NCBI RefSeq assembly: GCF_000315625.1
Contig: NW_005434582.1
Coordinates: 170,152-234,151, forward strand
Reading direction: 5' to 3'
From: Guillardia theta CCMP2712
Taxonomy: Eukaryota > Protista > Cryptophyta
Length of the DNA: 64,000 nt
Made by a program: the position numbers and the translations under genes. Below are positions 10,040 to 59,840 of this stretch, in pieces. How positions within the stretch are numbered: the stretch's first letter is position 1; each line of letters begins with the position of its first letter. The notes beneath the pieces were generated by a model. The model saw nothing but the letters and a program-made list of their open reading frames with translations. It had not been told where the DNA came from and ran no database searches.

Positions 10040-10601
10040 TGATCGTCACGGCTGGGCTCGGAAAGGGCGGCCGTCAGCGTTGCCGCCGCATTTCAATCAT
10101 GCGGCAGTGCGGCCATAACTTACTGTACTACTGAAACGGTTACGGAGTCACGCGAACTTCAGGCTGAGGGTGACTCAATGAGCCTCGGAGTCACTGAATT
10201 CTGAGCCACCGTTGACTCGCCGCCGCCTCTGACTAGTGAATTGCCTTGACGGCCATCCGGGGCACAGTGTGAGACTTGAAGGTTTTTTTCACAGTTTTAT
10301 TAGTAGTATGCCGCCGGGTTTTCAGTCGGAGCCGCTCGGAGGCCCCCCCGCTGGGCAGTCACAGATCCGAGCCTCGGACCGTCACCGTGAGAGCAGCGGC
10401 CACCGGCCCGCCGGGGCTCCGAGCGGCGAGTCACTGCGGCACCCGGTAGCGGCCGTCCCCGGCCGGCAAACATTCAAACGGTTAAGTTAACTTAGTAAAA
10501 ACCGGCCCACCCGGGCCCGGGCCGACCCTAGGCTGCTGCTAAAAGACACGGTACTTCACGTTTGAAGTTTACTCAAAGTTAAGTTAAAAATCCGATGATC
10601 A
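10040..10601. promoter_or_regulatory. GC-rich intergenic motif block (type B), copy 1
   Basis: CCGG/GGCC/GAGTC-rich. Contains TTTACTCAAAGTTAAGTTAAAAATC (10568-10592) and ATCCGATGATCA (10590-10601), both of which recur exactly in other blocks. Regulatory role is inferred. Confidence 0.45.
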
Positions 10602-11770
10602 GTACGAGGGGTGCTTCACGGTTGGAACTAGCGGTGTGTACCACCCACCCCCACACATATCTGACCAACCACGGGTCGAGTGACCCGGTCTTTATCCCAC
10701 CGTTCGGCAAATCCTCATCCGCCGGGTGACCGGTGCGAACGGTACTGGCATCCCATGACCCCTCAAATGAATGACTACCACCCCTTATTTGTGTGGGAAA
10801 ATAACCCCTTCCAAATTCAGATGGACCCGGGACTCTCATGTACCGGGGCGGGCCCTGCTGGGGCTTCGGAGTACGGGACCGTGACCCCGGTCCGTGTTAC
10901 GGCGGGGACAGTCCCCCCAGTCACCCCACCCCCGGACTCTCATGGAAGTACTACCCCTTCAATGGCCGGGGGGGGGCTTGGGAACAATACCGGTACCTCT
11001 CCATCTAGTACCCCTTGCTGACTACGATTCAAAATTATCTCGACCAGGGGTCCAGATCCAACAATGTCAGTCACACGATTGTTGTACCGGTAGTATCGGA
11101 GGGGCAGTACCCCACCCTGACAGGCAAGGCTGCCGGAGTCCCGGACATTCCGATCTAAACGGTTAGGTGGTCCCACCCCCGTTTCTGAAGGCCTCTGACC
11201 ACCCCTGTGGCCCTACCACCCCCACATCCATAACGGCAGTGCGGGGTCGGACCTGGGTTTTACCACCCCACCCCTATGTGCTAGTACCTTGGGTCACGGT
11301 ACGGTCTGAGCGGTAGTTCCTGTACTGATGTAGCGATGATGAGTAAAATCTTATAAGTCCCTCGAGACCACCCCATCGACCTGGGTGGGTGGTGCCAGTG
11401 TCATAGTTCATACATGGCAGGGGTGGTATTCATCTTATGTACCGAAAAGTTCGAATTCGGACAAATTGACTGAATTTCTGTATATAATTCAGGAATAATA
11501 ACTAAAACTTCATGAGGGATGCCTGGTCCTTTGATGTCTATATTGGGGATCGGGGCTCTCAACAGTAAATTTGAAAGTGGGGTAGGGTAGGTCATAGTAC
11601 ACCTTCAGGGGTGGGGTGGGGTGAGGTGGAACGGGTCTATAACCCCCTCTACCCTCGGTACCTTCATGAAGGTTTCCCATATACTACCCTACTCTTAAAC
11701 GATCTTTGCACGGGTGGTGAAGGACCCCAAGTGATCCCGGCTTACCACCCCCCTTTCCGACTAAAGCCTG
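10602..11770. promoter_or_regulatory. TACCC/GGGTA-rich upstream block (type A) before the kinase gene
   Basis: Dense TACCC, GGGTA, GTAC and G/C runs on both strands. No credible ORF. Lies just 5' of the kinase gene. Confidence 0.4.
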
Positions 11771-12111
11771 GACCTCATGCTAGTAGGCCTCCCTTCAAGT
11801 CCTCGCGCCAATGGAACTTGCCGCCCTTGTTCGTGCTGATCCTGCTCCCACTCCTTCCTGCTCCCTCTCTTGCCTGCTGCCTGCTTCTCCTGCTCGCCAT
11901 CCGATCTCCCTTCGTTCTGAATGCATGATCCTTATGATGACAACACTGTTGAGCGCGCAGGACAGCTTCTGACAATCTCCTACCAATTATATTCATAGTG
12001 TAGCATGCATACCTTGGCCTCATGGTGTCAAACTTCGCTACATTGTTGTGGATATATCTCGAATGCCATGATTGATTGCATCACGAATTGACTACGTAAT
12101 TTGTTTGGTAG

Positions 12112-15100
12112 ATGAAGCCGGGCGAGTACAATCCAAATTATCATAATTCAAATTCATATTATGGTCCGATTCATGGGGGATTGAACCGGAACGAGGTTGG
12201 CGATAGCAACAATCAAAAGCGAGAGATGATGTGACTGTGTCTTGGTAGATGTCGATGAACCGAGCTAGTCATTCAGAGCATTATGTCTACACCAATGAAA
12301 ATCACGACCTGCAGATGATGAGGAGCTCTGCTCCTCCTCTCATTGTCGTGAATCCGGAGATGCTGCAAGATGAGGTTGTTCAGTCGAACTCGGCGCGCTT
12401 TTATCTTACATGTGCCCATGATGTGTTCAGGTGACCAGGCTTCAGAGCCTTCTGTCTGCAGCAACCAAGGAACTGGGAAGACAGATATCAACCAGCAAAG
12501 TAGATGTCAGCTTGAGCCAGAATGATACGAGGAAGGCCGAGTGGCTGCAGAAAGTTGTTTTACAGGTGTGTTGTGAACAGAACTCTGAATGTCCATGACG
12601 ACCGTCTCGTGCGCAGCTTGAGTCAAAGCAAGCCTTGATGGACAGCAACCTGCGGAGCCTCCGTGATCAGAACACCTCCTTGTACCAGACGGTCGAATTT
12701 GAAGGGCTCTGTTTCAATGATTGATCATTTTCAGTAGATCAATGAGCTGAAAAATGAAAACTTTGGTTTGAAAGAAGAGGTCGCAAGGTCATTGAGAACG
12801 TCTGGTAGTGGAGCGTCGCGAGATATGGAGGTGAGTGATTTGAAGCTATCGAGATGCGTGTCCTAAATGATTCCTCCAGGAGAAGGTTCGCATGGTCAAG
12901 GACGAGTTGGAGTCCTATCGCAAAAGGGTATTGAATTCTACTTGTCGTCTTTGGTGTGATGTCCGTTGCAGTTTGAAGATCTTTCGAAACGCTACATTTC
13001 CATACAGGAGGTCAACCGTGCACTGGAGCAGACTAAGGTAACAAGAGTGTGATTCTCGAGTTTTGTTGTCGTGTGACTTGAAATGTATCTTGTAGAGTCA
13101 GAACTACGAGAACGACCAGTTCAGACTCAAGGTTCGTTCTGCGCAACATGAAGCTGTGGTCTAATCTGATTCGAGCAGGAAATTGAGTATTCAAACATCA
13201 ATCTCTCAAAAGCGAACTCCGAGCTGCAAGAAAAGAATGCTGCTCTTCTTCGAAAGCTGGAAGAACAAGCGGCTCAATTTGAAAAGCAGAAGTACATAAT
13301 GATGCAACAAAGAGATTCGTTGCAGCTCTCAATGCAAAAAGAAGTGGAATCGATGCGCAGAGAGCTGGTGGATTGGAAAACCAAGGCTGAGAAGAGTAGA
13401 GATTCATTTTCAATGGAGGCCATGCAGACGGCTCAAGACAACTCAGTACTTATCTCCGATTTGAAAGCCCTTGAAGCCTTGTACAAAGAATCTCAAAATA
13501 AGTTGGCAAGGGCTGAAATTCAGATATCGCAAATGATGATTTATGAGAGGGAAAATCACAATCTGATCCAAAGGCACGTCAAGAAGGATGTCACCATCTC
13601 TAAATGCAGCGCAAAGGTTCAGAGAGTGTCACAGAATCTTACATTGTTGAAAATGTTCGAGAGTTGGAAACGTTTGGCTGAGGACAAAAACCTTAACATA
13701 AGGGCTTTCTCCTTGTGGTCCAAACAAAGATTCCTCAAATTATTTCTGCATGACTGGCAGCTGGTCACTCAGGCTTCAATCAAGCAAATAGGTGACTTTC
13801 AGATGACAGCTGAGCTGAAGAAAGAACTTTTTATTGAGAAAGATAAGCGCAATCGCAGTTTCGTGAGCATTAGAAAGAATGCCGAGGCTCTGGGCAAGGA
13901 ATTGGGATGTATTTGCGAAGAGTTAGTTGCGATCGACTCGTCGTTGAAAGAATCGAAACAATGGGTGGAAAACGTTGAAAAGAAGGCCCTGCAAGAAAGA
14001 GAGAGATTGCGAGATAGCTACGAAGGAAAACTGAAGTCCTTGGAGCTGACTCGTCTCGAAGAGGTGAAGAGACTCACTCTTGTCATCGAATCGAAGCAAC
14101 AACAGTATCAAGAAGAGCTGCAAGCTGCCCTGAAGAGCAGTGCTGAGCTGGAGACGAGAGTTCGTCAAGAGTTGATGCAGGAATCCACTCTGAAGGAGAA
14201 GCAAGTCCAGGATCTCAAAGATGATCTTGCTAAAGCTCAAAGAGAATGGAAAAAGAAACTGCTGGATAAGGATCGAGAATACTCGTTGCAATTAGAAACA
14301 GTGGAACGTCAAAAGTTAGAGATAGAGGAACAGCACTACGAGAAGCTGCGTGCCAAGGAGAAGGAATGGGAGAATGAAGTGGAGAAACTCAGAATGCAGA
14401 GTGTTGAACTGGAGAATGATCTGCGACAAAGATTCCAGGCCAGAGAGAAAGAATTGACAACCAAGGTTGAGAGCGCCCGACAGGAGTTGTCGAATGCACA
14501 GCGCGACTTTGAGACCGATTTGCAGGTGATTGCAATTGTCATTTTGTTTTCTCGTCACAAACTCACGATGATGATGTGTTTGTTTCAGGCAAAGGAAAGT
14601 GAGATGCAGGGCAAATTGACCGAGAAGGACAAGTATTATGAGACATGGCTGGAGACTATCGTTGCAAATAGGCTAAAAGACTCCCAAGCACAGATGGAAG
14701 AACGATTGCAGTTCAAAGAAGAGCAACTCGTCGCCATCCGTAAGGAATTGGAAGACCAGAGAAAAGTTGTCCAGGGATTCGCATTGAGCAGAGAATCGAG
14801 AGATTCCGAACATTCTCGCCAGATTGAGAGGCTTGAGAATGAGATCAAGAATCTCTCGAGAACGTAAGTCTGACATGATTACGTGGCGGTGTGTCGTTGA
14901 TCCTTGTCGTGGCAGGCTCGAGTCCAAGGCAGAGGACATGAAATCTCTGAGAAACGATGCGGAGGATCTTCAGAAGACCATCTCGGATCTCGAGAAGGAG
15001 AACATGCGGCTGGAGAAGCAGGTTGAAACGCAAGCGAGCGAGCTGCAGATCCTGGAGAAGCAGAAGGAGTCTCTCACCAACGAGCTCCTGTGGAAGGGAA

Positions 15101-17184
15101 GCCTGCCGCAGAAGACCTTTGCTAACCAAGAGGCTGAGAACATTGAGATGAGGGCAAGAGTAGAGATGGGCGAGCAGGAAATCCTCTACCTAAAGGAGAA
15201 GTTGGCTGTTGCTAACACCACAAACGAAAGGCTGACCACCGACCTCTTGGATGCATCGAAGCTGCTGAAGCAGTACAGCGCTGATGCTCAGAACTTGTCG
15301 TGGGAAGCAAACATGCGCGAGCAAGGGGGTGAGGAGCAGCGGAATAGAATGGAGAGCTCAAAACGAGAGTCTCTCAAGTCGTCGGAAGGGATGGATCTCA
15401 TCCAGAAGAAAGTGAACTCGCTGATGCTGGAGAACGACACGCTGACAAACGAGATGGACAAGATCCTGCAAGAAAACTCGATGCTGAGGGCTGAGGTCGA
15501 CGAGCTGAAGCAGCAGATCGAAGACTTCCCTGCTGGGGCTCCCAAGTCCCGCAGCGGCTCCTTGATGCCCTCGCGGTCGTTCGGCATGTACTCGAGGAGG
15601 TTGGTGGAGAGAATGTTTGGGTCGTGGGTGACTGAGATGCTCTCCTCCCGCGTGAGCGGTCGCAAGAGCTACTTCTCCAACCTCCCCCCCATGTTGGACG
15701 CCAACGGCTGCCTGACGCTGGACCTGACGACCACACGGCTGAGGAAACAAGACGTAGACATCAAGAACGAGAAGATCGGGAGCGGGACCTTTGCTGACGT
15801 GTTCAAGGGGGAGCTGAGAATCCAGTGTGCGGTGAAGAAGCCCAAGAGCCTGGGGAGCCACCAGGAGGTGCTGGAGTTTATCCGGGAAGGGGAGATGATG
15901 CGGATGGTAAACCATCCTTGTATCACCAAGACCCTCGGCATCCTCTGCGACCAGTCGGTCAGCGCCTACGTCATGGAGTACTTGCCGGGCAGCAACCTCT
16001 TCGACTACCTCCACAAGTACAACAAGACGCTTCTGTTTGGCAGGCAGGTGGACGTGGCGCTGCAAGTGTGCGATGCGATGGCGTTTGTGCACGAGCTCGG
16101 GATCATCCATCGCGACCTGAAGCCTCAGGTAAGGCCGCTCCTCTCCCTCCTCTCCTCCTCCTTTCTACCCTGCGTCTTTCTTCCCTGCATCTACCTCCTC
16201 CCTCACCTCCTCCACCTCCTCCTCCCTCCTTTCTCCTTGCTTCTCACACCACCACCACCACCTCCTCCTCCTCCCCATCCTTCTCCTCATCCTCCTCCCC
16301 ATCCTTCTCCTCACCCTCATCCTCATTAAATCCTCTTCCTCCTCCTTCCCACGATCTCTAACATTGCATGCAGAACGTCATCTACAACGACAAGACCGGT
16401 GGAGCAAAGCTCTGCGACTTCGGGCTGGCCCGTTCTCTCCCCAGCGGTTGCAGTCATCTCGACTCCATCCAGCTGGGAACTGGAGGGACCCCCGCATACC
16501 AGGCTCCTGAGGTGCTTTCGCTCCCCTGCCAGCTGGAGTCGAGCTGACGGGGATCGCAGGTGCTGAAGCGCCTCCCTATCAACCTCAAGGTGGACTTGTA
16601 CGGGTTCGCCATCACTCTGTGGGAGATGTACACGGCGCTGCTGCCTTGGAACGAGTGCACCCTAGAGCAGATGGCGACCCGAGTTGCCCTCTATAACGAC
16701 AGGCCTCCGATCCCCTCGGTCCGCTACTCTCCTCCCTGACCTCTTCTCCCCATCGTCTCCTCCTCCTTCTCCTCCTCCTCCTCCTCCTCCTCCTCCTCCT
16801 CCTCTCTTCCTTCCGCCCTCCTGCGATGGCTGATGGCTGCCACAGGACATGCCCATTGAAATGTCGGAAATCGTTATGAAGTGTTGGGACAAGGACGCTG
16901 ACGCCAGGCCCTCCTTCGCTCAACTTCTTCCTCCCCTCCGCAACATGCAAGAAACCTTCTCGCCCAGCTCCAAGATGTCCTCCGGATCCTCCAGCGGCTC
17001 TCTCGGCTCCTCCTCCACCTCGAGCACCATCGTCTCCTACATCTCCTCCCAGCAGAGCCGGAACAGCCCTCGAACGAGCCTCGTCAACACGCGGAGCAAA
17101 CCGCTAGTGAGCAACCCGCTAGTGAGCAACCCGCCGGTGAGCGTCCCGCGAAGCTCGTCCAGCGGATTCTACACAGCAAGATGA
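12112..17184 (+). CDS. Long coiled-coil protein with a C-terminal tyrosine-kinase-like (TKL/Raf-like) Ser/Thr kinase domain, multi-exon
   Basis: Short 5' exons (MKPGEYNPNY..., MSMNRAS...) are followed by heptad-rich ORFs 13299-14867 and 14824-. Kinase motifs across spliced exons: GSGTFADVFKG, CAVKK, HRDLKPQ|N, KLCDFGLAR, GTPAYQAPE, KVDLYGFAITLWEMYT, CWDKDADARPSF. Start codon is tentative. Confidence 0.85.
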
Positions 17185-17291: not shown

Positions 17292-19979
17292 CTACTCGTT
17301 CTTGACTTTTCGAGCAGTTTCAGGAGGAGCGCTGGAGAGGAGATCAGGAGTCAGAAGAGTAACAGAGAAACGTGCTGCGTGTAGAGAAGCAGGGCTAGGG
17401 AGGAGGGAGGTTGCGAGAGGTACAGGGAGGCAGAGGAGGAGGGAAGCGACTGACCTTCTAGCAAGACGATGGCCGATGGGATGAAGCACAAGGTCGACAA
17501 GGAGTCGAAGGTTGAGCCCGTTGAGTACCAGCATGCCGCTGAGAGCGACGAGGAAGAGGAGGCTGTTGGGGAAGCTCCCGCGATCCGAGTACACCTTGAC
17601 TGTGAGCAGCGCGTGCCCTGCGATCCTGAACAGACCGAGCGATCCCCAGTGGAGCTTCTCGAGCAAGGGAGAGGAGAGGAGGGCGAGCTGCGCGATGTCG
17701 AGGGCGTGCATGAGGAGGGAGTGGACTTCAGAGAGGAGGGTGAGGCAGATGTAGGGGACCAGCAGCTGCTTGGCTAGGCAGATGACGCCGCAGCACAGGG
17801 CGATGGTGCTGCCAGCAACGCCCGACCTGGCAGAGGAGCGGACGTTGGCCCGGTTCTTGATGCCGTCAAAGAGGGACCAGATGCTGAAGCCGCAGGTCAT
17901 GCTGAGGAGGAGGTTGCAGACCTGCCCTGCGTCGCTCCTGAAGGGGTTGCTGAAGCTCGAGACAAAGAACCCGACGAGGAGGAGGAGGACAGTCAAGAGG
18001 CTGTACACCCCAGACACCACGCTCCTCGCCCACTGCCGCTGCTTCGCATCGTCGAGGTCCGTGTAGATCCGCCCAGCCGCCATGGAGGAGAAGAAGCCAC
18101 AGGAAAGAGAGAGGAGGAGAAACAAGACGGACATGATAGGAACCAACCAAAGGGTGTTGATGTACTTGCCCCCTGCGAACCCTGCCACGAAGCACCACAC
18201 CATGCTCATCGTGTTGGTGTCCAGGGCAGAGAACGAGAAGGGGGAGGAGGAGGAGGCGGCGGCGCGGCTGGTCCTGGCCAGCGAGACAGGCGACTTGCAC
18301 CACACGATCTGGTAGTTGTGAATGAACTGCAGCTGGAAACCAGCTTCGCAGTAGCTGAAGTAGAACCTCCACTTCCTGTAGAACTCGTCCGAGTACCCCA
18401 GCTTCTTGATCTTGTCCTCCGCCCCCGTCCAGTTCTCGTGCCACATCTTGAGGGTCCGCGCATAGTGCAGGCCGATGTCTTCCACATGCTGGCAGAAGAG
18501 CGAAGAGTTCCTCGTCGCCCCCAGCATCGCCCCCATGGACGGCAGGTGGCCCCCAGGGAAGATATGGCGGCGGATGAAGTCAGAGCAGCGGCAGTACTCC
18601 ATGTAGTGCTCGTCCTTGTATGTGATGGCCTGGATGACGGCCTTGCCTCCCGGCACCAGCAGCTGCTCGATCACTCCGAAGTACTCCCCGAGGTTCTCGT
18701 GCCCCACCGCCTCGATCATCTCGATCGATACCAGCCTGTCAAACTTCCCCAGCAGCTCGGCCGGCAGCTTGCGGTAGTCGCAGAAGAGGATGGTGATCCT
18801 GTCGCTCATGCCCCGCTCCTCCACCTTGGCCGTGGCGTAGCTGAACTGTTCCTCACTGATCGTGATCCCCGTTACCCTGCACCCGAAGCGCTCCACCGCC
18901 CTGATTGCGAAACCTCCCCAGCCGCAGCCGATCTCGAAGATGTGATGGCCCGAGTTGAGTTCCAGCTTGTCGAGGATCAGGTCCAGCTTGTTGAGCTGGG
19001 ACTGGTAGAGGGTGTCCTGTGGGCTGTTGAAGACGCCGGAGGAGTACATCCAGGTCTCGTCGAGGAAGAGCCTGTCAAATCCCTCCGTCAGCCTCCTTGC
19101 AGTTACAGCATTCCTTGCCCTGTCCTCCTCTACGTTCTCTACCTTCCCCGCTCACCTTCTCCACGACCTTCACTACTTCCTCCTCTTCCTCCTCCTACTC
19201 TCCTTCCTCCTCCTCCTCCTCACCTGTACATGTCGTTGCCAAGGTCATAGTGCTCGTTGATGTTCTTGAGCGAACCCTCCACCGTGTTGGCCCTGGCCAT
19301 ATGCGCCATCGTCTGCACCTGAGTGCCGATCCAGTTGAGGACCCCGAGGCTCTTCTGCAGCGAGTTGAACTCTTCGACGTTCTGCGTGAGGACGTTTAGG
19401 AAGTTGGTCAGGTCGTCGGGCTCGAACTCTCCGTTCATGTAGCTCTCGCCCAGCCCGATGTCTGTATCCTTAGCGATCCGGTGAAAGAACTTGCAGTCGA
19501 AGACCCTCACGCGCGAGTGGTACACCTCCCTCCTCCCCTTCTTCTCGTCCCCTCCCTCCTCCTCCACGTACTTCTGCTCGGGGTTCCCGTACACCACCTC
19601 CGTCCCGTTGGGCATGATCAGCCTAAGGGAACCGCGCTTGATCGCCCTGCCCGCGAACCTGTGGACGGAGGAGCAGACGAAGCGGGTGAGGAGGGGCATG
19701 TAGGGAGATGTGGGTCGAGGGACCCAAGGGATCATTCCGCCCATCTTCTCCACCACGTTGACCGCAGACTTCATGCCATCCTCGTGGAAGCCGTACCCGC
19801 ACCAGGCTCCGCAGAACCATGTCCTCTTCACGCCCTGGATCTTGTCGAGCGTCTCCTGCGACTTCTTGGAGGCGCCGGAGAAGACGGGGTGCGAGAGCTT
19901 GAGATGCTTCACGGTCTTTTCCTCTGCTGGGGCCTGTACAACATCGTGAGGGAAGCAGCGAAAAGAAGAGGGGGAAAGA

Positions 19980-20031
<52 letters not shown>

Positions 20032-21409
20032 AGAAATGTGCGAGACGGGAGAAGGAAAGGGGGGGGGGGGGGGGGAGGTGGCTTGGGGCGGTTTGGAGGT
20101 TGAGGCAGGAAAGAGAAGAGAAGAAGAGACGAAGAAAGAGGAGGGGAGGTAGTAGAGAACTTACATGAGGAGGGTTCAGAGTCACAAACAGATCGCCGGT
20201 CCCCTCAGGCAGACGCTGTAGCGAGTTGACCCAGTAGCTCACGCACACGGCGCGGTCGGAAGGAGCATCCTTGTTGAGCTCCGTCATATCCAGGCAGTTC
20301 CAGGAGGCCCACACTTTCCTCTCCCTCGGCATCAGGCTGGGGTCTCGGTGGAGGTAGACGTCGTTCTCAGCATAGGGGATGCCCTTGAGAATCGCTTCCT
20401 CCTCCTTGCTGATGTCTCCTCCCAAGATCTTCATCGTCACGTCCGAGTGGGTGGCGAAGATCACGTGGTCGAACTCCTCACACTTCCCCTGCTCGTCACG
20501 CACCTCCACCTTGTCCCCCTTGCGCACGACCGACCGGACGGCACAGCTGCTGCGAGCGTCCTGAAGGATCTCCACGACCTTCCTGACGTAGCTCCTGCTC
20601 CTGTCCTTGACGACCCTCCACTTGGGCCTCTCGATGAGCTCGAGGAGGTGATGGTTCACCCAGAAGCGGATCATCACTCGGATCGAGAACTCCATGCACT
20701 GCTTGTTGCTCACGCTCCATACCGCTGCACACATCGGGAGGAGGTACCAGTAGGTGAACCCTTCACTGTACCCCTCCTTCTTCAGGTACTCTCCCAGCGT
20801 CATGTCCGCGTACTGCTCCTCCACCAGCACCTTGGGCGCCTCCTTCCCGAACCGCAGCACGTCTCGGATCATGAGCAGGAACTTGGGGCTGACTAAGTTG
20901 CGACGCTGCGCGAAGATGGTAGACAGGTTGTGGCTACCCCACTCGACCTTCCCGTCGTCCACAGACAGGGCGAAGCTCATGTCGCTCTCCTCACTGTCTA
21001 CTCCCAGAGCCTCCAGGAACTGCTCGAAGTGCCCGTACGTCGTCCTGTTGAACACCTGGAAGCCAAGGTCCACAGGAACTCCCGGGATCGTCTCGTCTGT
21101 GAGCGTGTGCCCTCCGAAGTAGTCCTCCGCCTCATACAAGGTCACCTTCCACCCTGACTTCTGCATCAACCATGCTGCCGCCAGCCCTGAGATCCCTGAC
21201 CCGATGATCGCCACCCTGCTGCCGTCTGCTCCTTGCATCTTCGGCCACAAGATCCGACGGTCTGCTGGCAGGGGGGCAGGGTCAGTACGACCGGAGATCA
21301 GAGGACAAGCGCTTGCTCAACAAGATGAGATTTGAAGAATACAGAACATTGAGGATGAGGGGAGCGCTTCCTGCTTACAACAGCATAACGGAAGCCAGCA
21401 TGTCGGCAT
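17292..21409 (-). CDS. Fusion of an FAD-dependent (amine-oxidase-like) oxidoreductase, a cyclopropane-fatty-acyl-phospholipid synthase-type SAM methyltransferase and a C-terminal TLC-like membrane domain
   Basis: Oxidoreductase motifs: VAIIGSGISGLAAAW, VDLGFQVFN, FCGAWCGYGFHEDG. Methyltransferase motifs: HYDLGNDMYR|LFLDETWMYSSG, EIGCGWG, SIEMIEAVGHE, IFPGGHLP, YFSYCEAGF. About 6-7 hydrophobic helices follow. Inferred introns: 20164-19934, 19223-19072, 17454-17332. The 5' mini-exon near 21409 is tentative. Confidence 0.88.
19981..20030. repeat. (GGAGCA)n hexamer microsatellite inside an intron
   Basis: Direct tandem repeat. It produces the spurious poly-Leu in the ORF track. Confidence 0.9.
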
Positions 21410-39300: not shown

Positions 39301-39319
39301 GCTATTCCCGGCATTATTA

Positions 39320-42540: not shown

Positions 42541-42589
42541 GTGATCTGAGGCGGGGTGGTGACCCTTCGCACAAGAGCCAACAATCGCC

Positions 42590-48626: not shown

Positions 48627-48659
48627 TGGCAGACTCGAGGTTTCGACCTCATGAACTGT

Positions 48660-49380
48660 AGCGCCAGACCGATCCGGGCTGCCATGGCCACTGAGTCATC
48701 ATCCGGCCTGGCATTTCTATGCCAAATATATTGGAGTCGCGGCGAGAGCTACCGTGCCATAGGACTAGTATCAGCGGGGCTCGGGCGGCTTGGATCTGCT
48801 GACATTCTCTTGTTTGTGTGACTTTCTGACGTCCGATCATGTACTATTTCAGAAACTTGGGGAAACGATGGATCGCATGCAAGCCGTGCAAGTGCCAGGC
48901 TGGCCGCCCGGCACTGAGCCTGAGTATGACAGTGCCGCTGTGCCAACAAAACTCTCCTAAACCAAACTTGAAACTTAAAGTTGGCAAGCCCGGCCGCTGC
49001 CGGCGACCCAAGTTACCCGGTAGTACTATAGGCTCGCGGGCCGCCGACTGCCGGGCGGCACTGCCAGGGCCCGGCCCGGCGGGGCGCGGCGCACTACTAG
49101 CCTGAGGCTACTGAGTCACACTGACTGAGCTCCGCCGGGCCGGGCGCCAATTAAGTGCCGCGGCGCCGCCGCCGCACCGGCGTGTGACCGCACCGCGCGC
49201 GGCCGCACTCGGCGGAGCCCTCCGTTTGTTGCCGGGCCGGGAGGCTTCAAGTTGACAACAGAACGGTGACCGGGCCGGGCTGCGGCGGCAGCCCCGGCCC
49301 CGCGGCCCACTGACCGGCAGGCCGGGCGGGTGCCAAGGCCACCGTGACCGTACTGAGTCACTGTGTGACTAGGTGACGTC
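48660..49380. promoter_or_regulatory. GC-rich type B motif block
   Basis: CTGAGTCA occurs three times (~48691, ~49111, ~49353), with AACTTGAA/TTCAAGTT words and dense CCGG/GGCC. Confidence 0.4.
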
Positions 49381-49389
49381 GTGATTTTC

Positions 49390-50590
49390 TATGACAATAC
49401 CCACCCACCCCTTATTCACCGAAGGTCCATGGTAGAATTAAGGTAGGGGTGGAGGTTGTTCTGCACGAGGAAGACACGGAAAAAAATCATCGGGGGTCAT
49501 ATCCTACCCCCGAATGTACATCAATTACCCCTACTTGCAGTGGTGTTCTAGGGGGTAGTCCATGACACCAAATAGTCGAAATATGCTCCTACTCGTATTG
49601 TTCCAACCACACCACTACCCCCAAGTTGACCCCCTGATTGACCCCACCCAGTGAAGAAAGGTTCATGTACCCACCATCGCCATTGGTACAACAACCCCAC
49701 CGCCGTTTGGCATACCCTACCCCATGCAACCAAAAGAGTACCCCACTTGACAAAAAAGATTGACAACCCCTTTTACCCCTTCGTCAATGATCTGAAAACA
49801 GGGGTGTCTTATGACCCTACCCCCTGAACTTAACGAGCAGTCTCTATGACCCCCTTTGACATCCAAATTATTACCCCCCCACCCCCCTGTGATTGCAAGC
49901 TTCTTTACCCACCCCAAAATTCTCTGCACGAGCCAGATGCCCTACATGAAGTTTATAACCCAAGGGGGTAGGGTGCACCACTCCTACCCCCTCTAGAAAG
50001 GGACAGTGTTTATCAAGTAAATTGTTCAAGATACTATGTATGGTGTTATTTACTATTGCTCCACTTAATAAACTTCATATCTTTGACACCTTTGACGTAC
50101 CCAATCCTTGAAACCCCCATCGGAAGGTAGAATGTCCTTCAGGACCCCCCCGTTGGTCAACCACCCCATGTTACTCCTACCACCACCCTACCCTGTTTCC
50201 CACAAAATACCCCGCCACAAACACCAAAGGACCGAATGAAGTACCCCATCCATTACACCACCCTTTTCAGATTACCCCATTCATGGAATGAGTACCCCCG
50301 AAGTTTTGTACCCTACCTCCAATTTCAAAATAAAAAGTTCTTGTATTTCTATTGTAATACCCATGAGAATTGTACCCCTACCCACAAATTTTCATTACCA
50401 CCCTACAATCAAGACAAGTTCAAGACCCTCTCACCCCTACCCCCCCTTGACCACACCCCACCCTCCAGTAGCTTCCCTGCTCGAGTTTGTCCCGGAGAAA
50501 GAGAGCAAACTCATCCCTGAAAAAAAACAATGAAGTACCCCACCCACTTTTTCACCAAGTATCATCGTATAGACTACCCCTTATCAAGAG
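49390..50590. promoter_or_regulatory. Type A TACCC-saturated block
   Basis: Dozens of TACCC/ACCCC words with few GpC dinucleotides. Lies upstream of the GATA-like gene. Confidence 0.4.
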
Positions 50591-51051
50591 TATGAGCTCA
50601 CAACTTGGTCCTTCTTTCTTTCTTTGCTCCCGCCACACGCCATGGCGACCGCGGTATGACAATGTGCCAATCTCCCTTCCCCCCCCCCCGGCATGGCAGG
50701 AAACTGGAGACGCAGTCGCGATTGCGATGATTCCTGTGTTTCCTTCAGGCCTCCTTGATGCTCGTGACTTGATCTCATCAGTCTTCATCCTCTCTGAAAG
50801 ATGCTCCACGTGCAAACATTCACTCCCATCGCCTGTGCACCCGTTTCAATCTCATTTCCCCTCCCTTGTTCATACTTTGTGTCTCATAGTCCTACTATAA
50901 TGCCTTGAAATCAATGTCAAAAATCTCAATACCCCAGCTTCACCTACCATGTACATTGGCCAGGGTCCCTGCTCAACGATCATGCCCAATCGCTCATTGA
51001 CCGTTTGAAGTCTTTCTCTTACCTTCGCCCCCATGTTGCGACGAGTCTCTG

Positions 51052-52533
51052 ATGTTGCCGCAGGCACAAGCGCTCTTGCGCCCGACCGTGCAGCACTCCC
51101 CAACCTTGGAATCTTTTCGGGATGTGCTGAATCGCCCATCCACCAAGAGGACAGAAGGATTGCAACGTTCGCCCAACGGCTCGTCGGGTGAACACACCAT
51201 GGCCAGTATTCTTCTATCAAATCTACGGGAAAGCCCTGTGATGGATTCATCCACCACTCCAAGATCAGAGCAAGTGACGAAAACTGATTGTATCAAGGCC
51301 AGCGCATGCTTACTCTCGGATTTTGCCTTATACCCGAGAGATTCTCACCAGAAGAAGCTCAAGACTTTTGAGATCTCGGAGTTTCGGATCGGTCAACCCA
51401 TCATAACTGTGCTAGAAGATCTGAACCCGCCTGAAGCGGCTGAAGAGAATGAAAAGCTTGCGGCAAAGCGCAAGGCTGAGGAGATGGGATTAGACGAGAA
51501 AGAATTGTTGGCTGCTGAGATCTTGTCCGCTTCTTTCGGAGGAGGAAGCGATAGCGTTGTTAGCGCAAAGAGCGGCAGGAGCAAGGCGGCGAGAACTGAC
51601 GGTCGAGGGCATGGTAATGGCTCTCGCAATTCCAACAGGGCGAGCGTCGCATCAGAGGGGGGTGAGAAAGACTCAACTGTGGGGAGGTTGAGCAATCGGC
51701 GGCAGTCGTCGAGTGACAGCTCCCCGAGTGCTCCGATCGTAGAGTGGGCCCGCAAGGTTGTTGATTTCTTGGAAGTGAACGGGCAGGACCTGCTTCATGC
51801 GATCTGCGCCCATTACAGAATAGAATTCTCGGGAGATATCCGCTCGATCCGAGACTACTCCATCGAGCAACTTGCGCACAATGCAATCTTTAACCCAGCT
51901 CTTCCGAAGACTTCTGGACGACTACCAAAGATGCTGAGGGATGTGGACGGGGTGGCGGATTGGAACATGACATTCTTGAAGAACAAAGCAGGTTTGTTTA
52001 GGCAGCCTTCGGCCGCAACTGTGATACTGACTGAGTCCTGTCTCAGGAATCTTTCGAGCCGTTCGGGTCACAGCAACACTCCATGGAGATCCATTGTTCC
52101 TCGAGTGCAGATGTTGCTCCTACTGCGGTTCTTGCTTCAGTGGTCGCTTCATGAAGCCCAATGCCATGCATCAGCAGGTACGAAGACTCCCGTACTGTTG
52201 CCGTCGCTCTTCGCTCACTTTCCATGTGATTCAGGCTGGGGGATGGAAGGAAATCACTGAGAGGACGGCAGCTGGCAAGTATTCCTGGGCAACCTTGAAG
52301 GGATGGAGACTCTGCGTCCCCTGCTTCACCCATTGGGCTTCCAACGGCACCAACGTGAATGCCAATAGGCCAAGCATTGAGGATCTTGTCACTGAGCAGA
52401 AGCCCGGCAGGACAGAAGGTGTTCTGCGTTGGGAGGTGCGAAGCTGCTTCTGCCCGGTGATCTTACTGACTTGTCGACCTGACAGACCGTCTCTTCTGTA
52501 GCGTTCGACCAGAAGTCTGTGGCGGATCCATAG
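51052..52533 (+). CDS. Hypothetical protein with a C-terminal long-loop GATA-like C4 zinc finger (probable transcription factor)
   Basis: After splicing introns at ~51992-52047 and ~52178-52234, the frame reads CSYC-x43-CVPCFTHWASNG, with the second pair in an 'LC..C...W' GATA-like context. Start is tentative. Confidence 0.6.
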
Positions 52534-52862: not shown

Positions 52863-53275
52863 TCATGTGTCGCTGAAGACGACCATCCATGGCTGGATGT
52901 ACTGACTTGACGGCGCTGCAGGAGAGTCAGGGACGGGGAGACGAAGCAGAGAGGAGGACGCAGAAAGAGAAGCGAGGAAGAGGGAGGGACCGCAGGGAGG
53001 GCATGGGAGGAGAGGGCATGGGAGGAGAGGGCAGGAGTAGAAGGGACATGAAGGAAGTCGAAATAGAGAGGAGGAGGAGGAGGACAGGAGACGAGCAGGG
53101 GCTACCTGTGAGGTCAGTGCAGCTCTCGATGATTTGTGTAGTGATGCTCCGCAGCCAATCGCAATGCTCCTTGCTCAATTGCGGTGCCTGCATGAGCAAG
53201 ATGAGAAGAGAAGGAACGGGGAGGAGGCGGAGGAGGAGGAGGAGAAGAAGAAGCAGGATTAGGAGGAGAAGCAGG

Positions 53276-53319
<44 letters not shown>

Positions 53320-54119
53320 GAGGTGGGAGGCAAGAGGGAGTCAGACTAAAGCAAGAGGTAGAGATGCGTGAGGAGAGGGGATAGGGAAGGCGATGCGAGG
53401 GTCTCTATCTTGTCCTCTTCCTTCTTGTCTGACAGGAGCAGGTACCTGGGACTCCTCCGTGACCTTCTTAATGGCTGGGAACTGCTCCTCGATCTGGGCC
53501 TTGAAGTTTGCGCCCTTCATGTTGCCGTAGCTCAGCGACTGGTACAGCAGGGCGATCTGGTGGGCCATGTACTTGTGGTTGCTGCTGCTGAGGTCAGCCC
53601 GGATCTGGGAGGCCATGGCGAGGGTCTGGTGGAGGAGTGCGATGTGGTTGATGTACTCCTTGAACGTCACCGACTTGTCCGAGCTGGGCTCGAGCTGCAG
53701 TCTCTCAGCTAGGGAGGGGAACAGCTCCAGCATCCTCAGCTGATCCAGAGCGTCCCGGAGGGACAAGCTGGGGAACAGCTGGCCGCACTCCTTCTGCAGC
53801 TGCATGTAGAGCTGCTCCAACCCCGCTGCACAGACTGTGCGAAGTCCGAGTTGTCGTTCGCCTCTACCAACTGCGCCTCCTTGTCGATCAGGATGCTCAT
53901 CTGAGCACAGATGCAGCCCACCGAGGTCACGTCGGCCCCGAGCTCCTCCTCCTCCTCCTCCCTCCGGCACAGTGGCTCATCCAGCATCACGTGCGCTGGC
54001 TCGTAGCCCCAGTCGAAGAGGTTGGTGCAGGAGACGATCGGGTCCGACTCCGCCAGCCTCGTCCGGATGGCAAACTGCTGGATAGGAGCTGGGCGAGCTG
54101 CTTTCGATGCGTACGACAT
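52863..54119 (-). CDS. Conserved-looking hypothetical protein with an apparent single-base frameshift near 53830
   Basis: ORF 54119-53736 (…DFAQSV) continues in another frame (AAGLEQLYMQ…NHKYMAHQIALLYQ…). Two pyrimidine-rich introns then lead to …PWMVVFSDT*. Confidence 0.6.
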
Positions 54120-55170: not shown

Positions 55171-55400
<230 letters not shown>

Positions 55401-55589: not shown

Positions 55590-55970
55590 GGGACTACTGG
55601 TTCCTGATTTTTAACTTAACTTTGAGTAAAGGTTCCGCAGCTCACCTCAGCAAGAATCATAGCAAGGTGACCATGGCAGTAAAAGGTTCACTTACTCAAC
55701 CAAGTTCCGTATGCGACTTGCGGCCCGCCGTGAAACAAAACACTAGTAACGCCGGGTGACTCGGGCCGGGCCCGACTCCCGGCGCCCGGGGGCCGAGTGA
55801 GACTCAGTCAGGCTCGTTAGCCCGAGTCAGTCCAGGCCCGGGACCGAACTTTTTAAACTTTGAAAAGATTAAAACACACTTGGAAAAACTTAAGAAAAAA
55901 AAATGGGCTCCGGGCGGGCCCGACACAAATTCAAGAGTCCCGAGTGTAGGAAGACATCCGATGATCAACT
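55590..55970. promoter_or_regulatory. GC-rich type B motif block next to the tRNA gene
   Basis: Reverse copy of the 25-mer at 55606-55630 and ATCCGATGATCA at 55956-55967. Confidence 0.45.
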
Positions 55971-56034: not shown

Positions 56035-56116
56035 CGACAACGATGGGATTCGAACCCACGCAGGGAGACCCTAATGGATTAGCAGTCCATCGCCTTAACC
56101 GCTCGGCCACGTTGTC
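56035..56116 (-). tRNA. tRNA-Ser (anticodon GCT), intronless, long variable arm
   Basis: Minus strand reads GACAACG TGGCCGAGCGGTTAAGGC GATGGA CT-GCT-AA TCCAT T AGGGTCTCCCT GCGTGGG TTCGAAT CCCAT CGTTGTC G. The acceptor stem GACAACG/CGTTGTC, A and B boxes and a downstream T-run are all present. Confidence 0.97.
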
Positions 56117-56403
56117 CTGTCACACAGGTTCATTCTATAGTTTATATATTAGTGACAAGGGTGGGTCCTTTGCTGGTGTTTGCGGGGTAGGGGTGTTGGC
56201 GGGTTCCGAACTATAGATTAGAACGCTATGAGTTCACAGAGTGCAGAAGTGTGAGGGGAAGAGCGAGAGTAGCGTCTTCTTTGATCTTTCTCTTCACCAT
56301 GAGAAGCATCATGTGTCTGCCTCGTTGCCATCAGGACCAGCAGCAACCCCAGCTTCTGGACGGGTTGAGCTTGACGGCGAAAGCGACAGACCTTGGGTAA
56401 TCA

Positions 56404-57779: not shown

Positions 57780-58270
57780 ACCACCCCACCTCACTCTATC
57801 TCTTCGATCACTAAAAGTACCCCTACTTTCAATAGAATTGATTCCTTATTTACACCGGTGATCATGAAGTATACCCTACCCTTTTCCACTCCATTCCAGA
57901 TATTGACCACCCCATACGGACCCACCCCGTTATACAAAGTCCTTTGCCCCACCCCCTACCCCCTCAATTCGTCCGTACCCCCAAATTCACAAAAATTCAG
58001 TCTACAACTGACCCCTATTTTTGTTATGAAAGTACCCCTATTCAGATAATGTATTGGAATAACCCTACCCACTATCAAGAGATACCCCCCACCCAGACAA
58101 ATCACGGATTCCACTGATCCACGACTCATAAAGGCATGCAAACATTCCTGTGGTGGGGTAGTCCCGCAATCCCACGGGGGTGGGTATATCTGTACGAGGT
58201 TACAGACGACTACAGGGGGTGAGGGTACTATTATTACGGTAAAGGGGTGGGGTGGGGTCAGGGTGTGAAC
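57780..58270. promoter_or_regulatory. Type A TACCC block upstream of the homeobox gene
   Basis: Dense TACCC/GTACCC/GGGTA words. Confidence 0.4.
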
Positions 58271-59299
58271 CTGACTATGGCGCGATGGATGCTGGTTGTA
58301 GCGACGGCCATGGCCATGGCGACCATGGTGCAAGGAGACAGAGGAACTACTCTCCTGGCTCACCGACATGCCTTCACTCCTCTCAGGTAGAAGAGACCAT
58401 CGCATGAGAAAGCTGCGATGGCCTCGGTCATAGCAGCGAACACCAGTGTGAACATTTATGACATGGTCTGCCGATACATCACAAACATATCCCTCGTGCG
58501 CCAGCTCCTGATATGAAGCACTGATATGATGATTCTGTTTGACAAGTACGACCAGTCGTCCTTCTGACACCTTGTTTCTAGCAGGAGCGGGCAGATCCGC
58601 AGGAGAAACATGTGCGCGGTCGCTATCCCTGGTGACTCAGTTGGGGAGGAAGTATTCGTTAGAGGCTTCCAGAACTTTCTTACTCTCTACCAGAATCTCC
58701 TGGTTGCCAGAGTGCTGTGAGTCAGAGACGCTCGTACCCATCGATGTTCCTCTTGACGAGTTCGCTGGCAGCCTTTCCTGGTTCCCTTCCGCGCAGTCCA
58801 TTGGAGCTCTCCAGCCCCTCTACAACGTCTGTGATCCGTAAGGCGTGTAGAGGCATCTATGCATGGTCTGAAGCTGTCTTGAAAGCTATCTCAACACTTT
58901 TCGTGGAATCATTCCGCCGATCGGCGGCATTGATCTCTCTCCCATCCTCGCTTTCACCCTTCTCCAAGTGTCAGCCGGTGCCATGGTTTCCCTGGGCGCG
59001 GAGACCCCGCGGAGGGTAATTGCTCGTCCTTGCGTGCTCACTGACGAAAGATCTGATCGTCTCTCCAGGGATACGAGGGATGGGCGAGAGTCCCCGAGCA
59101 GAAGGTCAACCATTCTGCCGATGGTTGTCAATGTGTCTGACTTGGTGTCTTTCCCGAGCAGGTCGGCATCTGCGAAGCATTTGTCAAGAGGAGGTTCAAC
59201 TTGTGAGTGAATGAATCAAGATCTTGGTCGATTGCTTGCCAAGTTTGCTTCCCCACTGCCAACCCCCCGACATCCTTCGCTGCCACCGAGTGCGGCAGT

Positions 59300-59840
59300 C
59301 CACCCCGTGACTCGGCGGCAGACGAAGTGAGACTCTAAGGGAAAGAGCATAAGACAACACGATCACTTGTCACGAGACTTGAAATGCCATTGAAAAGCAT
59401 GTGTCAGAATTTGCTGGACGATGAGCTGACGGCCCGGTGTATTTCGTTCCATACTGCCGCCGGCATCTCATCACTGCCAGTGTGATCAACGCGGCCAGTC
59501 AGTCACTCGGATCGCCGCTGCCAGAGCCTCCCGGAGTCCGAGGCTGGGACTCGGTCCACTGCCAGGACTCGGAAGTTGATGGTGGGGAGTCACTGAGCCG
59601 CCGCGCGTCACTGCGTTGCTGCAAGTTGGGATCAGTGGGGCGAAGCCTTCAGTCTCCGTACGATGTGACTCGAAGGTAGGCTCTGAAGACCCCGTAGGGG
59701 GGCGGACTCCGAACTCGGGGGACCGGGAGCCTGACGGTCCGGGCCCGCCTTTATATATTATGTTGGCCACCTCTGACTGGGGTACTTGCTGGATTATCTA
59801 GGGGTGGGGGTGGGGCTGGGGGTGGGGGCCGAGGGGTTTG
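59300..59840. promoter_or_regulatory. Type B block followed by a short G-run (type A-like) segment upstream of lpdA
   Basis: GAGTC/GACTC/CAGT/CCGG-rich, followed by ggggtac and ggggtgggggtgggg runs. Confidence 0.33.

Follow-up and report, generated by a model that had tools for sequence, protein, structure and literature searches.

The intergenic DNA of the stretch of the Guillardia theta genome analysed here is of two sharply different non-coding types, one (type A) lying by gene starts and the other (type B) just past gene ends, and by their position and composition these look like undescribed promoter and boundary regions, respectively. The stretch, called the window below, is a single 64-kb piece of the CCMP2712 nuclear scaffold JH993056.1 (record position = window position + 170151) and contains 12 promoter-containing, i.e. 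informative, spacers, for which the key tests give p values of 0.03–0.09; A and B blocks together occupy ~17% of it (A 10%, B 6.8%). The reading that we favour, with a probability of roughly 40%, is that both types are the non-transcribed spacer DNA of a compact genome, split into two functional domains, with A serving as promoter and B as a site of boundary formation or termination. To our knowledge, almost nothing is known of the promoters, terminators and chromatin boundaries of cryptophytes, which are ecologically important algae and cell-biological models, and no description of such blocks was found in the literature on the G. theta genome.

Composition and vocabulary of the two block types

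Eight recurrent blocks of each type had been described in an earlier note on this DNA, and the same 16 were recovered by unsupervised K-means clustering of strand-symmetrised 4-mer frequencies (K=4; blind to the earlier coordinates), in which the two minority clusters consisted of exactly the eight B and eight A blocks plus two tiny A-like patches. Block length ranges from 160 to 1200 nt, and the junctions between A and B are sharp, being 0–20 nt wide. A motif-free measure separates the blocks from their surroundings equally plainly, the observed/expected (o/e) ratio of TpA being 1.04 inside blocks versus 0.42 outside (AUC 0.954). TpA is depleted in introns, leaders and 3′ spacers as well as in coding DNA, and the signature of introns, leaders and convergent 3′ spacers is coding-like (TpA o/e 0.5–0.6, CpG o/e 0.6), while TpA o/e is ~1 in both A and B and CpG o/e is ~1 in B only. 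It is from this missing TpA/CpG depletion that we infer the blocks to be non-transcribed. The two types hardly share words, exact pairs of at least 13 nt numbering 31 for A–A, 22 for B–B and only one for A–B (1/54), and the description of them as non-coding and lineage-specific in appearance is upheld.

Type A consists of many short (T/C)ACCC(C)/GGGGT(A) words grouped into strand-polar arms; these arms are 58–71% G+T on their G-rich strand, and the words are frequently paired as CCCC-N-CCCC doublets. Although A makes up 10% of the window, 74 of the 88 copies of TACCCC/GGGGTA fall within it (binomial P=7e-59), as do 30 copies of ACCCCACC, compared to one elsewhere in the window, and all eight matches to a triple-TACCCC pattern, for which none was expected. 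Past the 4–5-nt doublet, no spacing periodicity above the null was found in A, whether nucleosome-scale or helical, and Tandem Repeats Finder (minimum score 30) returned just 15–22-nt arrays; A does not qualify as a tandem repeat or satellite, having no head-to-tail unit copies. Nor do the blocks qualify as G-quadruplex arrays, with seven canonical motifs in 6.4 kb of A versus 28 in ~53 kb elsewhere, which is only an ~2-fold enrichment in A. Neither do they qualify as interstitial telomere-like repeats or telo-boxes, to judge from the counts over the whole window (TTAGGG 6, TTTAGGG 2, AAACCCTA 0 copies). The CpG o/e of A blocks (0.31–0.63) places them outside CpG-island composition.

By contrast, all eight B blocks fall within that composition (>200 bp, GC >0.5, CpG o/e >0.6); they are strand-symmetric, 381–796 bp long, with GC of 0.51–0.70 and CpG o/e of 0.92–1.21. 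No literature on DNA methylation in G. theta was found. GGCCGG/CCGGCC has 40 of its 49 copies in B, which is 6.8% of the window (P=2e-38), and GCCCGGCC has 16 copies in B versus none elsewhere in the window; the vocabulary also includes the AT-containing words TTTACTCAA, AAGTTAAGTT, GTACGGTAC and CAGTGCC. Several B words are palindromic (TGAGTCA-type, GTACGGTAC, GGCCCGGCC), and B holds 18 perfect hairpins versus 3.2 +/- 1.9 in shuffles, with a mean fold-back energy of z = -2.1 versus -0.08 in controls, so that both palindromes and fold-back exceed what dinucleotide composition gives. The block richest in palindromes is B4 (eight perfect hairpins; MFE z = -2.6 and -3.7), and the segment 48960–49259 of B6 reaches an MFE z of -5.4. 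One 25-nt word, TTTACTCAAAGTTAAGTTAAAAATC, is identical at three loci with unrelated flanks: at the B1/A1 junction (10568–10592, plus strand), in B2 (31283–31307, minus strand) and in B7 (55606–55630, minus strand), with a 14–15-nt core of it in B4 (39457–39471).

Position, order and polarity of the blocks

Every block lies in a spacer that borders the 5′ end of one gene or two, an association that is partly trivial, since a genome this compact has hardly any free non-coding DNA other than that 5′ of genes. Among the 12 promoter-containing spacers, four or five hold both types, four hold A alone and three hold B alone. The large composites are four in number. B1 (10040–10601; K-means; GC 0.58, CpG o/e 1.09) lies downstream of the LRR gene and touches A1 (10602–11770), in which C- and G-arms of ACCCC/GGGGT words alternate upstream of the plus-strand kinase gene. 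A4 (38120–39300), mainly a plus-strand G-arm and hence C-rich on the sense strand of the minus-strand EF-hand gene EF1, starts 344 nt upstream of the EF1 ATG (37776) and is paired with B4 (39320–40115), which comes to within 150 nt of the stop codon of EF2, the minus-strand paralogue of EF1. A5 (41430–42110), a plus-strand G-arm 408 nt upstream of the EF2 ATG (41022), touches B5 (42110–42540; K-means), itself 289 nt upstream of a doubtful 81-aa plus-strand gene model (g81). B6 (48660–49380) starts 34 nt past the stop codon of the plus-strand gene g132 and touches A7 (49390–50590), a 1.2-kb pure plus-strand C-arm (54 C-runs versus seven G-runs) upstream of g439 on the plus strand (annotated ATG 50642, long-ORF ATG 51052). 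A smaller counterpart is B8 (59300–59750; K-means), upstream of the plus-strand lpdA-like gene and separated from it by a mini A-like G-arm on the plus strand (59779–59833), which is preceded by the word TTTATATATTA at ~59752.

The other A blocks include three in divergent spacers: A2 (21820–22440; C-arm 21824–22058, G-arm 22119–22416) between an amine-oxidase/CMAS gene (minus) and a signal-peptide gene (plus; ATG 22456), A3 (26180–27120; arms C, G, C, G with a central patch of B words at ~26480–26520) between genes for an HCO3 transporter (minus) and a JmjC protein (plus), and A8 (57780–58270; C-arm then G-arm), which occupies an entire 530-nt spacer between ATGs at 57748 (minus) and 58279 (plus). 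A6 (47330–47490) is a short G-arm between the minus-strand coiled-coil gene and g132. As for B, B2 (31000–31450; K-means), with nested palindromes, sits in the divergent spacer of g140 (minus) and g344 (plus), B3 (34060–34560; K-means) starts 125 nt past the g344 stop codon and ends 391 nt before the ATG of g434 (plus), and B7 (55590–55970) is 65 nt beyond the 3′ end of a minus-strand tRNA-Ser(GCT). The ends of the LRR, kinase and lpdA genes and of the genes at 57748 and 58279 are our own placements and not annotations. A gap at 44466–44565 falls in the purine-rich low complexity of the coiled-coil gene, whose annotated model (44720–46099) ends before it; being outside every block and more than 1.9 kb from the closest (B5 ends at 42540, A6 starts at 47330), it leaves the finding unaffected. 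The other gap, 61766–62592, is also outside the blocks.

A adjoins gene 5′ ends and comes within 9–30 nt of start codons in A8 and A2, the latter ending 16 nt before the ATG; with A8 filling the spacer between two ATGs and A2 nearly reaching one, A must contain the promoters and 5′ leaders that belong to these genes. In four cases the distance from the upstream stop codon or tRNA end to B is 34, 65, 125 or 150 nt, and B8 starts no more than 90 nt past an upstream gene end that we placed, with 289–1544 nt from B to the nearest downstream ATG. It is present in six of six head-to-tail junctions versus two of six divergent spacers (Fisher p=0.03). That B is an obligatory distal promoter module is not supported, four of the six divergent promoter pairs having none, and B behaves at least as much like a 3′-end or boundary element as like a distal promoter module. 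What does stand of the two-part architecture proposed earlier is its order: B is distal and A proximal to the gene in all four large composites (B1A1, A4B4, A5B5, B6A7), and also in the small B8/mini-A pair, although only head-to-tail spacers are informative in this respect and four of four corresponds to p=1/16 (~0.06). Its stereotypy does not, with both types in just four or five of 12 spacers. Blocks are dispensable for some promoters, since g434 and g344 have B only, and block length is far from constant. None of the six convergent spacers holds a block, as had been claimed, though all six are of 400 nt or less and so scarcely have room for one. The tandem EF-hand paralogues can be aligned, at 78%, over the gene and the ~100 nt before it; neither the A nor the B blocks of the two align, yet both keep the A-then-B layout.

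The polarity of A is not fixed relative to the neighbouring gene, and a simple directional-promoter model fails to account for it. The G-rich strand follows the transcription of the adjacent gene in A2, A3, A8, A6 and the mini-A at lpdA, and is opposed to it in A4, A5, A7 and most of A1. In divergent spacers holding A alone, the gene is faced by the G-rich polarity, and in the B–A spacers by the C-rich one. A2, A3 and A8 switch from C-rich to G-rich mid-block, so that transcripts leaving the centre either way would be G-rich. Read from B into A, A is C-rich in the four large composites, and the mini-A by B8 has the opposite polarity.

Much of this could also have arisen as a neutral by-product, with A and B merely untranscribed DNA that escaped TpA/CpG depletion and drifted to ‘cryptically simple’ states with no sequence-specific function, through slippage in replication (GGGGT micro-arrays), GC-biased gene conversion at recombination hotspots linked to promoters, and ectopic conversion between blocks; we hold this to be rather unlikely. 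It would suit the dinucleotide o/e ratios of B, all ~1.0 as in random sequence of 62% GC, and the presence and size of blocks differing among promoters, and convergent spacers may be block-free merely through having no untranscribed DNA. Four A blocks contain perfect short arrays such as (GGGGT)3-4, (TAGGGG)3 and (GGGT)4, and with these and its one dominant pentamer-like unit A does resemble cryptically simple sequence or degenerate microsatellites, but the arrays are only 15–22 nt long, the words stand 10–40 nt apart with unrelated sequence between them and 8-mer diversity is high. Drift leaves unexplained why there are two discrete vocabularies with such sharp junctions and hardly a shared word, why a 25-nt word is identical at three loci, why palindromes and fold-back exceed dinucleotide composition, and why B prefers head-to-tail junctions.

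Candidate functions and parallels

Under the favoured reading of the blocks as promoter and boundary domains, A most likely serves as a dispersed promoter or forms a nucleosome-depleted domain, and B is most likely a CpG-island-like boundary between the upstream unit and the next promoter, either a termination zone or an insulator, to judge from where they lie and what they are made of. The words of A may recruit a sequence-specific factor or form rigid G:C runs that disfavour nucleosomes. B would begin at the end of the upstream gene's short 3′ UTR and could act via dimeric factors on its palindromic words or, alternatively, via GC-rich hairpins in read-through RNA.

Parallels exist for both. 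In yeast, nucleosome-depleted promoters are set by rigid homopolymer tracts, poly(dA:dT), and general regulatory factors such as Reb1 (TTACCCG) and Rap1 (CACCCA-type), and these factors also insulate neighbouring genes from each other and terminate transcription as roadblocks. The TACCC/CACCC words and dense C/G runs of A upstream of genes presumably resemble such sites, but A has hundreds of word copies per kb-scale block compared to one or two sites in yeast. B is like the CpG islands found at the boundaries of vertebrate and plant genes in being discrete, intergenic and 380–800 bp long, with CpG o/e above the background of 0.6–0.7 that genes, introns and leaders show, and differs from them in that most B blocks lie just past a 3′ end, 0.3–1.5 kb from the next ATG and not over the TSS, and are palindrome-rich with a specific AT-containing vocabulary. 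Yeast also has RNase III/Rnt1-type termination, a hairpin-dependent fail-safe downstream of poly(A) sites; B, GC-rich, hairpin-prone and right after short 3′ UTRs, where the next promoter would have to be shielded from read-through, may be likened to it in position and structure only. In G. theta a spliced leader (SL) is trans-spliced onto at least one fifth of mRNAs (PMC5619915), and Trypanosoma brucei, from another lineage with SL trans-splicing, has GT-rich, motif-poor dispersed RNA polymerase II promoters (PMC5579346). Like these, A has no alignable motifs and a strand-biased G+T content, and the divergent spacers A2, A3 and A8 point the G-rich strand at each flanking gene; unlike them, A is built on a defined word, (T/C)ACCCC, and not on overall GT-richness, its polarity towards the gene is reversed in B–A head-to-tail spacers, and G. 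theta genes are monocistronic, with operon structure not reported (PMC5619915).

A wider reading, which we regard as speculative and on balance doubtful, is that in G. theta, and perhaps in cryptophytes generally, each RNA polymerase II unit is punctuated by two word-density states, B ending or insulating the upstream unit and A acting as a dispersed promoter whose polarity is fixed with respect to B; chromatin and transcription would then follow a ‘start/stop’ code that is genome-wide and specific to the lineage. Should blocks prove to mark the starts and ends of genes throughout the genome, gene boundaries could be re-annotated with landmarks readable from sequence, transformation vectors could draw on the blocks for candidate promoters and terminators, and there would be a tractable case of regulatory DNA that keeps its word content without alignment; at their share of the window they would also matter for estimates of ‘repeat’ or ‘functional’ DNA.

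Mobile elements and RNA genes as possible alternative sources

It is quite improbable, in our view, that A, B or the B–A unit derives from decayed or miniature mobile elements, i.e. non-autonomous transposons or fold-back elements that inserted by preference into open promoter-proximal chromatin and diverged past alignment. Cryptophyte genomes other than that of G. theta are more than 50% repeats (PMC12220804), and the blocks are like MITEs and fold-back transposons in being short, non-coding, near genes and dispersed in many copies, with nested inverted repeats in the palindrome-rich B; A being C-rich read from B in the four large composites could make each one oriented unit, and a short mobile module could account for the 25–47-nt segment common to B1, B2 and B7. 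However, as the term ‘motif soup’ in the earlier note had implied, there is no alignable repeat: no pair of the 16 blocks aligns over more than 25 nt in gapped local alignment (best Smith–Waterman scores ≤25 for B and ≤17.5 for A), and the longest shared words are ≤17 nt in A and ≤25 nt in B. Self-blastn of B against B gives 24–59-nt seeds (at most 47–59 nt at 75–81% identity), the exceptions being one 143-nt B4–B5 match at 65% identity, which looks compositional, and one 65-nt A–A match. Consistent terminal inverted repeats are absent at block and composite ends, the best pair in a scan of the four composites being 34 nt at 71%, in B1/A1 alone, and neither a TSD nor a family consensus was found. 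Among 20 ORFs overlapping blocks, none matches a Pfam family at E≤0.01, transposase and reverse transcriptase included, and a search of 1.8e9 proteins found no relatives for an ORF across B3. Within a block, a given word comes back many times and in both orientations, which the decay of a single element would not give, and the mini-A beside B8 breaks the polarity of a B–A unit. With no end-to-end alignment, terminal inverted repeats, protein relics or Rfam matches, there is no sign of a transposon or RNA-gene origin.

Very unlikely, finally, is that the A arms are outrons, 5′ leaders or upstream antisense G-rich RNAs and B structured RNAs: upstream outrons are indeed discarded in SL trans-splicing (PMC5619915), the mid-block switch in A2, A3 and A8 would make outward transcripts G-rich both ways and the fold-back potential of B is significant, but A and B are without the TpA depletion common to all demonstrably transcribed DNA classes here, the SL sequence was looked for in the 64-kb window and not found, nothing was seen in Rfam at E≤0.1 in the two composite regions 37800–42700 and 48600–50700, and the sole match to Rfam 15 at the gathering threshold in the window is the tRNA-Ser at 56035–56116.

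Two block types and their composition

The earlier note had distinguished two kinds of unusual non-coding DNA in this stretch of the Guillardia theta CCMP2712 nuclear genome. A blocks (A1–A8) are a soup of (T/C)ACCC(C)/GGGGT(A) words adjoining gene 5′ ends; B blocks (B1–B8) are GC-rich, CpG-island-like and rich in palindromes. Word counts over the window placed 30 copies of ACCCCACC in A and 1 elsewhere, with 74 of 88 copies of TACCCC/GGGGTA and 73 of 95 copies of CCACCC/GGGTGG also falling within A; GCCCGGCC has 16 copies in B and 0 elsewhere, and GGCCGG/CCGGCC has 40 of its 49 copies there (binomial P = 1e-38 to 1e-59 for this confinement). As these counts depended on the block coordinates of the first reading, the segmentation was redone blind, using K-means on strand-symmetrised 4-mer frequencies in 300-nt windows. 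Two minority clusters matched every one of the 8 A and 8 B blocks, the only extras being two small A-like patches, at 42501–42800 and beside a tRNA gene. A motif-free statistic, TpA o/e, was 1.04 in block windows versus 0.42 outside (AUC 0.954); these three lines of evidence confirm that the blocks of the first reading are real. No published description of them was found in the literature on the G. theta genome, its telomeres and its DNA methylation (the 2012 genome paper lay outside this coverage).

The unit of A is a run of 3–5 C residues that in 76% of cases follows an A, with T or C ahead of this A, and units are frequently paired one base apart (CCCC-A/T-CCCC). Typical words are AGTACCCCACCC, found in five blocks, TACCCCTACCCC and GGGGTGGGGTGGGGT, spaced by 10–40 nt of unrelated sequence. 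Word periodicity did not rise above a gap-shuffled null, so that a hidden tandem periodicity was rejected, and TRF found only micro-arrays of 15–22 nt. C and G are sorted into separate arms, i.e. strand-polar runs that are C-rich or G-rich on the forward strand: A7 is a pure C-arm of 1.2 kb; G-arms make up A4, A5 and A6; a single C to G switch is seen in A2 and in A8; A3 has the order C, G, C, G; and in A1 the arms alternate repeatedly. The G-rich side is turned towards the gene in divergent spacers holding only A, and the C-rich side in spacers of either orientation holding B and A; polarity relative to B is constant in the four large composites (B1A1, A4B4, A5B5 and B6A7) and reversed in a mini-A beside B8 (59779–59833). 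Because C and G segregate on opposite strands, both CpG (o/e 0.47) and GpC (0.38) are low in A, and the equal depletion of GpC led to the rejection of a methylation footprint as the cause of CpG depletion. G-quadruplex arrays were rejected as the identity of A, canonical motifs being only about 2-fold enriched, as were telomere-like repeats for the blocks, since telomere-like words are rare in the window. Exactly at the A5/B5 junction (42100–42145) there are three GGTTTAG heptamers and a TTTAGGGG word (permuted plant-type telomere unit).

B has a GC content of 0.51–0.70, symmetric strands and every dinucleotide near expectation, with a CpG o/e of 0.92–1.21 versus 0.6–0.7 in the remainder of the window. 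Its vocabulary includes GC-only words (GGCCCGGCC) and the AT-containing words GTACGGTAC, TAAGTTA, TTTACTCAA, CAGTGCC and GAGTCAC/TGAGTCA. Perfect hairpins (stem of at least 7, loop of at most 8) number 18 in B versus 3.2 ± 1.9 in dinucleotide shuffles, and are below expectation in non-block DNA (17 versus 28). The MFE of 300-nt windows has a mean z of −2.1 in B, where 6 of 10 windows lie below −2; the mean is −0.4 for A and −0.08 for a set of 43 control windows. B1, B2 and B7 share one 25-nt word, TTTACTCAAAGTTAAGTTAAAAATC, without any difference, although their flanks do not align; its 14–15-nt core recurs in B4 along with a palindromic variant.

Introns, the 300–450-nt leaders between A and the start codon, 3′ flanks and convergent spacers all have TpA o/e of 0.5–0.6 and CpG of 0.6, like coding DNA, leaving A and B as the only DNA in the window without this signature. 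Depletion of TpA, which reaches 0.27–0.45 in coding ORFs, is not merely avoidance of stop codons, because introns, leaders and 3′ spacers share it. Introns are transcribed, and the convergent spacers can only be 3′ UTR; most simply, then, the signature would mark transcribed DNA, and A and B would be non-transcribed spacer.

Arrangement of the blocks between genes

Gene ends were taken from annotated models or, for several genes, placed by us from ORFs and Pfam matches. The six head-to-tail spacers all contain B. From the LRR gene (to 9369, +) to the kinase gene (about 13170–17181, +), both placed by us, there are B1 and A1; from g344 (32177–33935, +) to g434 (34951–36859, +), B3; from EF2 (40265–41022, −) to EF1 (36892–37776, −), the two EF-hand genes, B4 and A4; and from g132 (48057–48626, +) to g439 (50642–52533, +), B6 and A7, these six models being annotated. 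B7 lies between the Rfam-identified tRNA-Ser(GCT) (56035–56116, −) and annotated g250 (52863–54119, −), and B8 with the 55-nt A-like arm between a gene with its ATG at 58279 (+) and an lpdA-like gene (from about 60300, +), both placed by us. The divergent spacers hold A2 only, A3 only, B2 only, A5 with B5, A6 only and A8 only. The remaining annotated models are g140 (29787–30603, −), g81 (42829–43271, +), g460 (44720–46099, −) and a partial JmjC gene (28259–28968, +), whose full extent on ORFs and Pfam is about 27150–29565; the same evidence places an amine-oxidase/CMAS gene (17295–21316, −), a signal-peptide gene (from ATG 22456, +), an HCO3 transporter (23441–25825, −) and a gene with its ATG at 57748 (−). 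The EF1 ORF (37012–37776, −) is 92% identical to GUITHDRAFT_116172 of G. theta CCMP2712, which is encoded on nuclear scaffold JH993056.1 of GCA_000315625.1; two loci retrieved from that scaffold (L001 and L003) match parts of the window exactly, scaffold coordinates being window coordinates plus 170151.

B is thus present in 6/6 head-to-tail versus 2/6 divergent spacers (one-sided Fisher test, p = 0.03; counting the spacer upstream of the tRNA as a head-to-tail one lacking B raises this to 0.09), in a sample of 12 informative spacers from one 64-kb window. The distance from the end of the preceding gene (stop codon or tRNA end) to the start of B is 34, 65 (B7), 125 or 150 nt, and for B8 probably at most 90 nt; the exception is B1, at 671 nt, where LRR exons may extend further. 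A8 and A2 lie 9–30 nt from start codons, and A4, A5 and A7 lie 340–460 nt away, separated from the ATG by a leader rich in CT or AG. In spacers with both types, A and B abut within 0–20 nt, and the order 3′ end, B, A, 5′ end is seen in all four informative head-to-tail cases (p = 1/16), in keeping with the B-distal, A-proximal order first proposed. The absence of blocks from convergent spacers, also claimed at that stage, holds, as none of the six has one, but is weak evidence because these spacers (33–400 nt) are too short for a block.

Candidate functions and alternative origins

Our preferred reading, to which we give a probability of about 0.4 on sequence evidence, is that A may be a dispersed promoter or a domain disfavouring nucleosomes, and that B may be a CpG-island-like boundary or termination domain after the short 3′ UTR of the upstream gene. 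B goes with junctions where the upstream gene runs towards the downstream promoter, and since 4/6 divergent promoter pairs are without it, the earlier idea of B as a required distal promoter module was abandoned; the core of that interpretation is kept with B's role changed. The reading is plausible because a leader is trans-spliced onto many G. theta mRNAs (PMC5619915) and trypanosomes, which share trans-splicing, have motif-poor, GT-rich dispersed promoters (PMC5579346). The interpretation given in the earlier note is partly supported.

A rather less probable explanation is that both block types are a neutral by-product of non-transcription. The EF-hand genes allow a comparison of paralogues. 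EF1 and EF2 are tandem duplicates (37041–37867 and 40297–41155, minus strand); their exons and introns and the roughly 100 nt preceding the ATG align at 78% identity, and homology ends abruptly before the A blocks. Neither A4/A5 nor B4/B5 align, yet both copies retain A then B. Block turnover may far outpace that of introns with word content kept, or the two sets may have been acquired separately; neither course fits a simple neutral decay from a single inherited sequence.

It is unlikely that the blocks are decayed mobile elements. The blocks yielded no terminal inverted repeats, none of 20 ORFs overlapping them matched a Pfam family, and self-comparison gave no A–A or B–B alignment past short seeds. 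The best inter-block local scores exceed those of shuffles, yet equal at most 25 nt, which bears out the description of a ‘motif soup’ and not an alignable repeat. Exact common words of at least 13 nt number 31 pairs for A–A, 22 for B–B and 1 for A–B, the last involving a patch of B-like sequence midway along A3. The long ORF of B3 had no relatives among 1.8 billion representatives, giving two weak low-complexity matches, one of which (L005) was discarded as an unrelated tandem repeat. Unannotated transcribed or RNA elements are very improbable, given no Rfam match in the window except the tRNA; the spliced-leader sequence is absent from it, and SL RNA genes were rejected as the identity of the blocks on that ground.

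Related loci and other features of the window

Word-indexed protein searches with the EF-hand, kinase and LRR genes found no paralogues elsewhere in G. theta, and cluster look-up gave no relatives. L002, a contig from a marine metagenome that carries genes for a kinase and an HCO3 transporter (33% identity), is probably from a distant alga and has no A/B blocks. A 3.2-kb metagenome contig (L004; ENA ERZ930064, run ERR2281809, PRJEB17505) is 96.9% identical to window 6248–9484, spanning the LRR gene region with its intron and ending about 550 nt before B1, and this identity indicates that the sample contains a strain of G. theta or a closely related alga. The 25-nt B word was absent from JGI metagenomes and IMG/VR. 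A triple-TACCCC pattern matched at least 120 metagenome loci; the ones looked at in detail proved to be simple repeats or to lie on unrelated contigs, with no G. theta-like A/B composite. Two were discarded, L084 as AT-rich and phage-like, and L041 (JGI contig Ga0209503_10031674) as GC-rich, algal-looking and unrelated. In L041, apparently coding stretches are broken by CCCTAA-like hexamer arrays (CCCTAA, CCCGAA, CCCCAA, CCCTAC) that look intronic.

The assembly gap at 44466–44565 has purine-rich low-complexity sequence on both sides and apparently lies within a minus-strand coiled-coil gene, whose annotated model (g460) ends before reaching it; it leaves the A/B finding untouched because the nearest blocks are B5 (ending at 42540) and A6 (starting at 47330). 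A second gap of 827 N, absent from the earlier note, lies at 61766–62592 inside the lpdA-like gene region. The 5′ end of the g439 model looks doubtful: its annotated start seems to require a first exon of about 12 nt with a GTATGA donor directly after (50642–51052), and the long ORF starts at ATG 51052. Just upstream of the tRNA-Ser(GCT) are the 11-mer TTTATATATTA and a small G-rich patch resembling A (56159–56201); the 11-mer is met again near 59752, in the interval from B8 to the lpdA-like gene. Arrays of related hexamers, of the CTCCTG/CAGGAG and GGAGGA types and with as many as 37 copies, occur at five places (55180–55400, 59847–60060, 53190–53400, 63760–63870 and 19954–20170); they cross-align at 70–93% identity, and some are in coding regions.
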